Assembly (NCBI GenBank): GCA_904063045.1
Contig: CAJFCJ010000006.1
Location: forward strand, 186,001 to 250,000
Direction: 5' to 3'
Source: Dimorphilus gyrociliatus
Lineage: Eukaryota; Animalia; Annelida
DNA: 64,000 nucleotides
The notes under the pieces were generated by a model. It was not told the DNA's origin and searched no databases. It saw only the letters and a program-made list of their open reading frames with translations. Positions 5,226 through 62,300 of this stretch are shown here, piece by piece. The number at the start of each line of letters is the position of its first letter. The stretch's first letter is position 1. The translations under genes and the position numbers were made by a program.

Positions 5226-6057
5226 AACAAACAAACAAACAAACTGTCTTTTAATGTCAACGGTAAAAAAAATTTATTTGTTTCTTCTTCTCTACATATA
5301 CCAAAAAACACTGTTTAAATAAGAATCGCATAATATATACGCATATATACAGATATTATATACTGTATATACTAATTAGAATGATATATATTAGTATATA
5401 TAGATTATAAAGAACCTTTTTTTACTAAAAGAAGAGTAATTTTGAAATGACTATCTGTTATATTTTATGCTTAACCTAAAAAACGTCCTCTTTTTTTATC
5501 CCTCCCTCCTCTTTCTTCTTTGTACATATGTACTGGATATATAATTTTAAAAGAGTAATGTTATGTGTTATGTAATAAAAGCAAAAAAAAGATGAAAGAA
5601 TGTGATTAATTTGTACGATTTCAGGAATACCATTTTTTTTTTGATAAAAAATGTTACTTCTGAAAAAAGTGACATCAATTTACCTAGAAAATGTTCTAAT
5701 TAGTTGGAATGTTATCAATAATTATCAATTTATCTTTATATAATAGAGCTTGTATATATAATATGCATTTATATATGTATGTACGAACATATATTTGATA
5801 TAAATTCATTATTGTAGTAAAATTCATGAACTTTGTTTTCTAGACCTTAAGATTAAAATGTAAAAGAATGATGGTTAATCTAAAACATTGAAGGAATGCT
5901 AATTAATAGTTTGCAATCTGTAACATAGATAAACATCTTTATGGGAAATTTTTATCAAATGCTTTGAAAAGTGTTAGTAATTGGGACGAAACTGTATTCA
6001 TTTTTTTATTTAAACATAATTACACTTGAAAAAACTGCGATAATTAACCCAAGCTGG

Positions 6058-6069
6058 CGCCAGATGGCG
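6058..6069 (+). promoter_or_regulatory. CTCF-like motif CGCCAGATGGCG upstream of NQO-like gene
   Basis: Near-consensus; CACGTG E-box about 70 nt downstream. Confidence 0.4.
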
Positions 6070-6502
6070 ATTTAGTCGCATCTGTCAATGAATCGAAAAT
6101 TATGATGGTGAATTTATAGTTAATTACAAAAATTTCCGTCACGTGGGATGTCAGTGTAAAAGCGAAGAATGTGTTCGTTTAAACAATAACGTCCCATTTT
6201 TATATAATATATATAAATATATATTTTATACTCTCTTTATCAAATTATTAAATATATAAATAGATATTAAAATGCTATTAAGATATCTAATTTCAAGTTT
6301 AATATTCCCTAAATATTATTATAACCAATAGTTTCATAAAAATACCATATAATAACTTCCTGTTGTTTAAAGAACTTCTCATAGAAACAAAACTTTAAGG
6401 TAAGTAATCATGACATTGTGAAAAATCGGCAACACCGATGGGTTTAACGTTAATCAATAATATCGCTAAAATCAGAGCTGTTTGAACGTTTCCATAGTCG
6501 CG

Positions 6503-7510
6503 ATGAGGGTGCTTGTGGTATACGCTCATAATGAAAAGAAGAGTTTTAACCATGCCCTTCTCGATTCGGCTATTAGGACACTTGAAGAAGAAGGTCATAA
6601 TGTTACAGTGTCTGATTTATATGAGCAAGAATTTGATCCGGTGATATCAAGGAAGGATTTTACTCCAGAATACGAGATAGATCGAAGAGAACATGTAAAT
6701 TACGCTCTAGAATATGGAAAGGCCTGGAAAGAAGGTAGGATTGACAAAAAAATTGTGAGAGAGCAAGAGAAATTAGATGAAGCCGATTTGGTCATTTTTC
6801 AATTTCCTATGTTCTGGATGTCAATGCCTGCAATATTAAAAGGGTGGTTTGATAGGGTTTTTATTGAGAATTACGCTTTTGGAGAAGGTGGAAAATATTA
6901 CGACACTGCCCGATTTTCGGGTAAAAAGGCTTTAATCAGTATAACAACTGGAGGAGGGAGAGGATGGTTCACGGATCACAGTCCAAATGGAGACATTAAT
7001 GTTATCTTATGGCCTATACAAGTAGGTATAATTGACGTATGTCTCAAATCTATAATATTTTATCTCCTTTAAAGAGTATTACCTAAATGATAAGAGATAT
7101 AGTATATCACCTGATCTTAAGGAGATTTAGGTTAGAATAATATATATATATCTATATTTATGCGTATAATTAATTAACAGAATGGAATTTTACGTTTCGT
7201 CGGCTTTGACGTATTGGCCGCCCAAGTTCACTACGCAGTTGAAACAGCAACTGAAAAAGAGAGGCAATTAATACTATCGGGTTGGACGAAAAGATTAAAG
7301 AGGCTAAGCGAAGAAAAACCAATTGAATTCGTATCTCTGTCACAATACGAATACGAAGACGCATCAAAACCAATACAAGGAATGCGATTAAAGGAAAAAA
7401 CACTTGACCAGAACGCAGACTCTGGTTTCGGTTTAACTGTTGGCCAGCATTTAGGCAAGCCCATACCGCCAAATTCATTGATATATAACAATAAAGTTAT
7501 TGAAAGCTAA
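6503..7510 (+). CDS. NAD(P)H:quinone oxidoreductase (flavodoxin-2 fold) with NQO1-type C-terminal extension
   Basis: Exons 6503-7021, 7181-7510. VLVVYAH, VSDLY, FQFPMFW...PAILKGWFDRVF, GDINVILWPIQ|NGILRFVGF, FGLTVGQHLGKPIP. Confidence 0.92.
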
Positions 7511-58559: not shown

Positions 58560-58800
58560 TGACGAACATTAAATAGTGCTACTTGAATTTCGACGAATGA
58601 GTACATCACACAAACTGGATTTGACTGATCCGATTGCAATACAACAAAGTGCAAATATTATCCTCATAACAAACGCATTACTTACTAAAAAACAAATATA
58701 CTTGGAAATGTTCTGAGTTGAGGATTTGTGATATTATTCCATATTAGATTGTCAGCTACAATCATTTGCCAATGCCCCAACAATAAGTTCTTCAACGGTC
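58560..58800 (+). pseudogene. Degenerate LRR-like coding relic, copy 2
   Basis: FRRMSTSHKLDLTDP and TWKCSELRICDIIPY*I; paralogous to 55800-55920. Confidence 0.3.
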
Positions 58801-59363
58801 AAATCCGTTTACAGTAAACATTGGTACACAAATACTTTTGACGCTTTGACGTTGAAATGCATAATTAACCCAGGTGTGCCGAGCTTCCCGTCATAAAAAA
58901 AAGTTCGTGACATTGGCAAATGTTAAATTTAGCATATATTTGCAGCGTTTTATGTTTAAAAATGGAGGATCAAGTAATTGCTGGATTTAAAAAAGTCTTT
59001 ATTTTTATTTTTTTGTCAGAATATACAATCTGATATCAAAGAGAGAGTCACATAAAACAAGTAATGCAACAATTTCAGATAAAAGTCTCATATAACAAAG
59101 ATTTTATAGGCATATACTATCTTTTCAAGTTTCTGCCGTTTAAAAGTACTTGACGATATATCCTAAAAAACGCTTGTTTTTGAAGAGGAGTATTGAATAA
59201 CGATAGAAATTCACTTTTTATTTAACTATTTATTACATACTTTACAAAAGAACAATCCTTTAAAATAAAAATTAACTAACACAACAAAAATACAATAAAA
59301 CATGATGGAAAAATACTAAACATAATTGCAAGTTCTCTCGCTTAGCACAAATTTGTTAAATAA

Positions 59364-62300
59364 TTATTTCTTATCTCTTTTACTCAGATCTTCAGCTTGA
59401 GCCGAGGCCGCTGCAACTGCCGCCACTGTTTGTAATAAAGCAATATTAATATAAGCCTTGAAAAAAATAAGAAGCTTTTAAAATCTAAATTTAAATTACA
59501 CTATCCGCCAACACGCCGCACAACAGCAACTTAAAATAATCGTATATGTATAGTTATATATAGTAATTTATACAGTATATAATTACATTTATTTTATATA
59601 TATATACTGTATATAACTATACATGTATGATTTTTTCAGCCACATAAATCTATATCTATTTTACAATTATAATCCGTTAAAGAAGAAACTTCACAATTGT
59701 TGTATAGATATATAAAAGGAGGAATATAAAAATCTAAACAATATAGTTCAAGTGTTTATATCGATTAAAAAGCTTATACACAACATAATATTTGCTCAGG
59801 ATTTGAGTGCACTCGGACGAAAATGGGACAACAGAGCGTCACCTGTCGAATCCTTTCTAATCATTTTCGTCGGAGGCGTTCCGAGATCGAGTGCTACTGG
59901 CGTTAAAGGAGGAGCTGCAGATGCTGCAGCCAATAAAAGAGATGTTGCTGTTGCTGCGTTACGTGCTACCTTAGCGTCGTCTACTGATGTTGCTGCCGCT
60001 GCCGCTAAACCTAATTTTAACGCGCTGTTACTTTCGGTTAATGAACTAAATTAGAAAAACGACAACAACTAAAAGAAGCCTTCTCAAATTCGGTTAGAAT
60101 CTAAAAAAGAATTACTGAAGCATCTAAGCCGTCGCTTTTTGAATACCTTTCGCTGATTTTCCTGACGATTTTTTAGAAGAATGCTGTTGGGCCACGTTAA
60201 GCTGTTGAGCTGCTGCTGCAGCCGCTGTTGATTTTTTTAGAAACGCGATATCACTCCACTCTACTTCAGTAAACTCTATTCGAGAATAGAGTAGAACATT
60301 TATATCTTACCTTGCATAGCCATAGCTGGAGGAACGATTCCTGTCGGGAAGGCATTAGCATATACTTGAGCGGCTGCTGATAAATATTCCCTAGCAGCTG
60401 CGACACTCGTTGTTGAAGGTGTCAAGAAAGTATTCGCTGCGCTAGAAGAAATTGTTGTAGGAATAGGTGCCGTAGTACTAACAGCGCCTCCTACCAATCT
60501 TGACAGAATATTTCTTTCTGACATCTGCAAGCGCTGAGTAACGGCTGGTATCCTGCTTAAAGTCGCTGGCAATCTAGCCACGTCTTGCTTCATGTCGCTA
60601 AGGAGTTCTTCAAGCTGATTTAGAACTTTATGTAAAACTGCGTTGGCAGGCTTATTTCCAGCCAAGCTTTCCTTTGATAAATGCTGATGACTCTCTGCAA
60701 GACACTCCAGCTCGGCAAAACGAGCATTCAAAGCCATAGCTGGATGAGCTGGATCTTGTTGTAAGTTCAAGTAGGCCGCTCTTCTTAGTTGCTCCTCAAT
60801 AACGAGAGCTTGTTCAAGAAGCTTGAATCGTCGTGCTAAAAACTTATTCTTTATTTCTAAGTAGTTGCCCTTTCCTTGTTCTCCACGGAATGGTTCGTTC
60901 ACAATAGTGAAAGTTTCATCATTTTGTAAATCTTGCCATCGTCCATATCCGTGTTTTACTATTCCCGCAAGCAACCAGTAATCATGCTTTCTATGCCAAA
61001 CTTCATTCTCTCGGCCAGAAATTAGGGCCCTATGTTCATTTTGCCATAAAGTATGCAATTCGGTGAAACCTCCGTCAGCGATATTGAACATAAAATCCTT
61101 CTTTTTCTTCTTCTTGTCTGATTTTTTATCAGACTTTTTCACTTCTCCATTTTCGATTTTCTTTTCTGCATCCTCAGATGTTTCTGATTTATCATCCTTT
61201 TGACCATTTTCCATCTTAACATCTTCACCCTTTTCGGACTTATTGGAGTTGTTAGTTAGCTCTGAATCAGCTGGAGCAGTGGTAGGGGAAGCGGATTTTT
61301 CATTTTCAGTAATTGCTGCGGTATCATTTTCTGCCGTCGACTTTTCGCCTTCATTCGACGTCTCATCCGAGTTAATCTTTTCTTCGTTGTTGATAGTTAC
61401 CTTAGGTTCTTCTACACTATCTTCTTTTCCATTTTCTTTTTCAGGTTCGTTTTCGCTGTCTTTTTCTTTCTCTGTCTCTTTTTCTGAATCTTCTTTGCCT
61501 TTTTCTGACTCGTTTTCTTTTATTTCTTCAGGCTCTTTTTCTTTTTCTTCACTTTGGTTGTCAATTCCATTATTTTTCAAAACTGACTTGGTTTCCTCTG
61601 TAGGTTTCTCAGATGTATCCATTTTCTCCTTTTCAGATTCAAGATTATTTTCACCTTTAGACTCTTTCTCAGGATCTTTACTAGTTTCATTAGATTCATT
61701 TGGCGTATCCTTCTTTTCGGCATTTACATCCTTATTTTCAGCGGTTGGCTCAGCAACTTTACTGGGCATCGACTGGTTACCATTAATACTTTCGAATTCC
61801 TGCACTTTTTTCCTAACTAAGGACATGATACCTATTCTTGTGAGAACATGTTGTCTAGAAAGACCTTCCCTTGGTACTCCGTCGGCAAATGTCTCCGCAT
61901 TGTCAGCACCGGGTTCACATAAATGCCTCATGAACAAAGAAACGTAGGCTCTAAACTCTTTTTCGCTTTTGCCTCTTAAGTCTCTTACAAGCCAACTCGA
62001 AACATTATCAGATTGAGGTGGCATGCCATATCTCATAACTAAGTTAAGGAAAGACTTTCTCTGACGGGCATTAAAGCCAAGAACTTCGATTTGTCCATTA
62101 ACACGAGCAAGTAAGGGAGGAAGGCCTCTTTCTTTACCATCACCAGTTTTCGCCATTCGGCGGGCTTTCTTTGAGTCAGCTTTAGTTTCATCAAAATCGT
62201 CATCTTCCTTATCTTCTAAGTCACTAAAATCAGTATCCAAGTCACTAAGTTCGTTATGCCAGTCTTGTTCTCCTTGACCGGTCATAGCATCATTATAATT

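Follow-up and report, generated by a model that had tools for sequence, protein, structure and literature searches.

What has left the same eleven-letter word, TATACWGTATA (W being A or T), at scattered places along a compact annelid genome? The question is raised by a stretch of 64,000 nucleotides of Dimorphilus gyrociliatus (contig CAJFCJ010000006.1, positions 186,001 to 250,000; hereafter the window), in which the original prediction read these words as scars left by the excision of Tc1-like transposons of the Sleeping Beauty type. Here we report that the motif is highly specific and abundant, that it matches both the termini and the target preference of resident Tc1-like elements, and that its distribution is non-coding and orientation-free. 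In our view the motifs were probably left behind by the excision of Tc1-like cut-and-paste transposons of the Sleeping Beauty type, elements with an inverted repeat/direct repeat (IR/DR) layout and a DD34E transposase; most likely, thousands of past jumps are recorded in them.

The window holds 11 exact copies of TATACWGTATA (Table 1), two of which start at 47344 and 47351 within one triple cluster; these are precisely the sites of the original prediction, and there are none besides. Dinucleotide shuffles of the window lead one to expect 0.09 copies, with a maximum of 1 in any shuffle, and Markov models of orders 1-5 whose training sequence was the window, motif left in, give 0.06-0.27, in keeping with the earlier rough figure of about 0.2, so that the enrichment survives a high-order null. 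When 11-mers of the window are ranked, (AT)n comes first and TATACWGTATA second. Roughly 27 words of the form TATA-NNN-TATA are present, and CAG (6) and CTG (5) supply 11 of them, the best other triplet occurring twice. All window sites are in AT-rich non-coding DNA, as had been proposed: the surrounding base composition is 67-80% AT at every one of the 11, and 10 fall in stop-free frames of fewer than 70 codons (the exception, 19254, is inside a TA repeat), compared with 40% of random window positions whose frames run to 100 codons or more. They lie 3' of open reading frames (ORFs), between ORFs of a single gene or in intergenic DNA, with no shared position; the site at 50124 is probably intronic. 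The tandem run described from 47344 is indeed there, two CAG units followed by a CTG, its letters running TA-TA-CAG-TA-TA-CAG-TA-TA-TA-CTG-TT. One or more CWG interrupt ten TA tracts of the window, which also has 13 pure tracts of (TA)≥4.

Genome-wide, too, the excess anticipated over words of the same composition is found. Across the assembly (77,897,245 bases in 349 contigs; the window is C6:186001-250000 in our contig numbering), TATACWGTATA occurs 7,166 times and the reversed word 150 times, an enrichment of about 48-fold. Among 29,800 occurrences of TATANNNTATA (all TATA-NNN-TATA), CAG and CTG, 2 of 64 possible triplets, supply 24%, and they make up 87.5% of the 8,192 words of the form TATASWSTATA (S being G or C), where the remaining six triplets average 171. 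The shorter TACWGTA is present 24,999 times, compared with 9,766 for TAGWCTA, 12,506 for ATGWCAT and 14,009 for ATCWGAT, all three being same-composition controls, which leaves a surplus of about 11,000-15,000. In a de-duplicated local sample of 146 kb, comprising the window and further loci of the genome, no TATA...TATA interruption of length 1-8 other than CWG was comparably enriched.

The canonical Sleeping Beauty footprint is 5'-TACAGTA-3' or 5'-TACTGTA-3', and arises through a cut of the non-transferred strand at a point within the element, after which end-joining closes the break (PMC6943129). The motif studied here has the same structure, namely TA, the terminal three nucleotides of an element (CAG or CTG) and TA, and the same genome holds TA-duplicating elements with CAG...CTG ends, which we call families A and B.

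Family A is represented in the window by a 1,335-bp Tc1-like element. The CAG..CTG ends and the ATATA left flank ascribed to it in the original prediction are both present, the left flank reading GGATATA; on the right, CA (57589-57590) stands where the TA duplication would be expected, presumably through a T-to-C change. A 14-nt direct repeat, TAAGTAATTATAAC, is found at 56266 and 56461, with mirrored copies at 57364 and ~57560, which is the IR/DR layout. The transposase ORF is truncated to 263 aa, and the element is therefore non-autonomous; 34 residues separate its second D from the E (DD34E), and its sole match in the PDB is the Sleeping Beauty catalytic domain, SB100X (5cr4, E 7.9e-31). 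With an identity of only 80-88% to its relatives in family A, this copy is old. The family numbers about 25 copies, with 37 exact TACAGTCGCGAT ends genome-wide, and TA precedes CAG in 32 of 34 unique half-sites; three of the half-sites are in (TA)8 tracts, and one has a footprint 6 bp away. At unrelated loci there are non-autonomous derivatives with 96-99% identity over their full length, so the family was mobilised in trans in the fairly recent past; among the copies sampled, the longest (1,604 bp) has broken frames only. One 659-bp derivative occurs at both C27:215048-215710 and C7:4553923-4554585 with identical match scores. These are separate insertions, an origin as haplotigs being rejected by 10-kb left flanks that share no sequence, and the pair looks like the recent mobilisation of a copy resembling a miniature inverted-repeat transposable element (MITE).

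Family B begins TA-CAGCCGCGGTC, and its ends read TA-CAGCCGCG...CGCGGCTG-TA. In at least seven copies the two ends are separated by exactly 1,657 bp, and stop-free frames of 345 codons are present in five; in the sampled copy (L003), 297 visible codons are open, with DD34E spacing. The transposase matches Pfam DDE_3 and has a far better score against SB100X (5cr4, E 2.4e-27) than against Mos1 (~1e-4). Family B is young and a candidate for an active element. The genome as a whole yields 353 DDE_3 candidates; 150 of these were scored, every one above the cut-off.

The scars can be compared with insertions of family A whose flanks were chosen independently of the motif. Half-sites ending in ATA make up 79% at family A insertions (n = 34) and 69% at TACWGTA (n = 138, from 69 sampled 7-mers), against 37% for all TA dinucleotides; for those ending in TATA the values are 56%, 51% and 13%. 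In their flanks the scars thus agree with the target-site profile that 34 independent insertions give. Not one TACWGTA occurs in 20.6 kb of sequence belonging to family A copies, compared with 27 in 57 kb of their flanks (~6 expected from TATA content). The absence inside the copies fits accumulation over time in older DNA, although avoidance of the elements would explain it as well.

The proposed course of events follows the Sleeping Beauty model. An element would insert at TA, with a preference for an ATATAT context, and duplicate it. On excision, the non-transferred strand would be cut 3 nt inside each end, leaving a 3' CAG overhang on both flanks; the overhangs could pair C:G and G:C about a central A:A mismatch, and end-joining with mismatch correction would yield TA-CAG-TA or TA-CTG-TA, a net insertion of 5 bp. 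Repeated hits in TA-rich tracts, together with fixation by drift, could have produced the ~11,000-15,000 scars of the 78-Mb genome, and the 11 of the window among them. The staggered cut of 3 nt is suggested by the form of the scar and by similarity to Sleeping Beauty, and the end-joining route and the former occupation of each site would follow from the same model.

Other processes could place such words in a genome. The motif could be the junction between TA and an unrecognised MITE or pogo-like family with an inverted repeat starting CAGTATA, surviving as ends or internally deleted remnants. The ends of Drosophila pogo begin CAGTATAAT, and some of the 7-mers continue as TACAGTAAACA, perhaps as the termini of a further family. 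The genome paper, moreover, reports mariner-type MITEs (PMC7854359). However, past the TA repeat the flanks of the 11 window sites and 69 sampled 7-mers have no sequence in common; inverted repeats bounded by TA-CAG...CTG-TA, when sought in the window, amounted to a single chance-level pair, and an all-against-all BLAST of the 146-kb sample placed zero TACWGTA inside repeated segments. Nor is the pairing of ends visible genome-wide, where 787 close pairs (gap of at most 8; controls give 4-9) include only 199 in the CAG...CTG arrangement, similar to the other three orientations (161, 223 and 204). With flanks unconserved and the CAG...CTG pairing absent, MITE or mini-element ends are largely refuted, and we consider this origin highly improbable. 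A somewhat less remote, though still very improbable, explanation is mutation within TA microsatellites independent of any transposon, either by cutting of cruciforms or hairpins and templated repair or by expansion of a 7-9-bp unit. The motifs do occupy TA tracts, some form short arrays with a period of 7 or 9 (window 47344; C2:1356083-1356127), and same-orientation pairs outnumber the others (427 vs 360). Yet the arrays are short and most sites single, both centre letters can stand side by side within one tract, and we know of no process that inserts specifically C-W-G. Pure microsatellite expansion is rejected by the single sites and the CWG specificity, and a mutational origin of any kind would leave the match to resident element termini and target preference unexplained.

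Selection for a functional site is the other possibility to be weighed. A perfect 5+1+5 palindrome, TATAC-W-GTATA, which is strongly over-represented in a genome with many Tc1-type DNA-binding domains, could be the target of a domesticated transposase, for instance, or of a transcription factor that binds as a dimer, and there is perhaps a small chance that it is. But the positions are scattered over introns, 3' flanks and intergenic DNA, perfect 11-mers by the thousands would be unusual for a binding site, and the element copies contain none; the signal, furthermore, decays outwards as a TA repeat in the manner of a transposon target profile, and the footprint model predicts the sequence letter for letter. 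Pumilio-type UGUAHAUA elements in 3' untranslated regions are hardly credible. The CTG form followed by TATA does contain TGTATATA, and several window sites lie 3' of ORFs; against this, the left half, TATAC, varies no more than the right one, the CAG form has no TGTA on that strand, sites are found in introns and intergenic DNA too, and the word that stands ~48-fold above its reverse is symmetric. The invariance of both halves and this symmetry speak against a Pumilio site. Excision by Sleeping Beauty-type Tc1 transposons, as first proposed, is supported by the enrichment controls, by the matching resident ends and Sleeping Beauty-like transposases, by the agreement of the flanks, by the absence of conserved sequence beyond them and by pairs that lack an orientation bias.

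Several points weigh against the excision reading. The 5-bp insertion relative to an empty TA, and past occupancy, are things that we infer at every site. The 3-nt stagger is an assumption for the transposases of families A and B, taken over from Sleeping Beauty; the C. elegans elements Tc1 and Tc3 cut 2 nt inside. Scars exceed the detectable Tc1-type transposase remnants (the 353 candidates) by ~30-40 to 1, and long-term hopping is therefore required. From the slight surplus of same-orientation pairs and the occurrence of 9-bp arrays it follows that slippage, and not a separate excision each time, produced some of the copies. Finally, such a palindromic word might, in principle, be a protein-binding site.

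From a comparative standpoint, the annelid motif is identical to the canonical Sleeping Beauty footprint TAC(A/T)GTA over all 7 bp, and shares with it the TA in alternating AT and both centre letters (PMC6943129); the rare TA-CAG-CTG-TA variants of that system are also found here, TATACAGCTGTATA, with both overhangs retained, accounting for 2 of 50 among the pairs listed. The Sleeping Beauty footprint has been described from excision experiments in mice and vertebrate cells (PMC6943129), whereas the annelid scars are natural, fixed and genome-wide, at ~10^4 sites, and are known from sequence alone. The resident elements resemble Tc1-like IR/DR transposons of the Sleeping Beauty group in their TA duplication, CAG...CTG termini, inverted repeats of ~220 bp each with two direct repeats, and DD34E transposase with SB100X as best PDB match; they differ from its members in being new annelid families, with a window copy that is truncated and non-autonomous. 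Comparison of grass genomes has likewise used cut-and-paste scars as a record of DNA-transposon activity (PMC4423477). The grass scars are variable and were found by aligning two genomes (PMC4423477), in contrast to the annelid scar, which is uniform and visible as a k-mer in one genome.

The published assembly, of ~78 Mb, has a transposable element content of 4.87% (PMC7854359), and the original prediction saw in the scars a possible route of transposable element loss. This part goes beyond the data: the number of footprints is a tally of excisions and not of net loss, and the same scar count would result from a few elements that kept hopping over a long time, their scars being fixed by drift. 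That the scars represent a large former Tc1 population removed by excision without reintegration, contributing materially to the low transposable element load, seems to us unlikely; if true, scar count and decay would form a datable record of the purge. Although the excision mechanism is already known, ~10^4 natural, fixed, canonical scars detectable as a k-mer appear to be unreported: natural genome-wide enrichment of this scar was not found in full-text literature searches, and the genome paper makes no mention of footprints (PMC7854359). DNA-transposon activity is usually judged from surviving copies, since excisions leave almost nothing. A uniform scar at ~10^4 sites, abundant enough to be read from a single assembly, would give a direct count of past excisions, allow estimates of historic hopping rates and target choice, and explain the frequent interruption of TA microsatellites. 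It also calls for caution in motif discovery, as the scar word resembles a strong palindromic "site". To this the window contributes an element with matching ends beside the scars, the young second family, the match of flank profiles and the test of pair orientation.

Table 1. Coordinates of motif sites and Tc1-type elements (window positions unless a contig is given)
Feature	Position	Strand	Remarks
Footprint (TA)3-CTG-(TA)3	5359..5369	.	~460 bp downstream of sodium:solute symporter ORF
Footprint (TA)3-CAG-(TA)3	14273..14283	.	intergenic stretch, 24% GC
Footprint (TA)6-CTG-(TA)6	19254..19264	.	183 bp past ankyrin ORF
Footprint TATA-CAG-TATA	19712..19722	.	
Footprint TATA-CAG-TATA	39329..39339	.	
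Footprint TATA-CTG-TATA	47172..47182	.	
Triple cluster CAG, CAG, CTG	47344..47368	.	right TA of CTG now TT
Footprint TATA-CTG-TATA	50124..50134	.	flanked by minus-strand ORFs 48252-48800 and 50244-52172
Footprint (TA)2-CAG-(TA)3	59569..59579	.	3' flank of CHD-type ORF
Footprint (TA)6-CTG-(TA)3	59603..59613	.	34 bp from the 59569 footprint
Tc1-like element, family A, non-autonomous, 1,335 bp	56254..57588	+	ends CAGTCGCG...CGCGACTG
Left inverted repeat, ~222-226 nt	56254..56475	+	direct repeat TAAGTAATTATAAC at outer and inner end
Right inverted repeat	57365..57588	-	91% complementary to left arm
Truncated transposase ORF, 263 aa	56524..57315	+	DDE_3 and Tc3-type helix-turn-helix remnant (HTH_Tnp_Tc3_2)
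Family B copy	C14:218225-219881		sampled locus L003:2750-3988
Further family B copies	C1:2849024, C14:179484, C19:730704, C28:446073, C30:417116, C85:53933		

Some minor observations concern the surroundings of the motif. After CWG, (TA)n is most often interrupted by one G or C (TATATAGTATATA or the complementary form; window 19265-19290 is an example), at about half the CWG frequency among the first 100 TATANNNTATA places on C1. Footprints of 1 nt have been reported for Sleeping Beauty in mouse spermatids (PMC6943129), and the single-letter interruptions could be of this kind or ordinary indels. The 7-mers that continue as TACAGTAAACA or TACTGTAAACA, at window 58811, L005:2335, L004:443 and L002:175, could represent either an end of another TA-CAG family or chance.

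Among the pairs listed that share one TA, the CTG-TA-CAG arrangement was seen in 5 of 50, CAG-TA-CAG in 7 of 100 and CAG-TA-CTG in 0 of 50 (small numbers, ~p 0.06), and TATACAGCAGTATA recurs in 5 of the 100 pairs listed. Arrays of period 9, in which TACAGTATA is repeated up to 5 times, are found at C2:1356083-1356127, C1:1087167-1087195, C3:1208270-1208298 and C4:806381-806409, and seem to be a scar with its TA units expanded by slippage.

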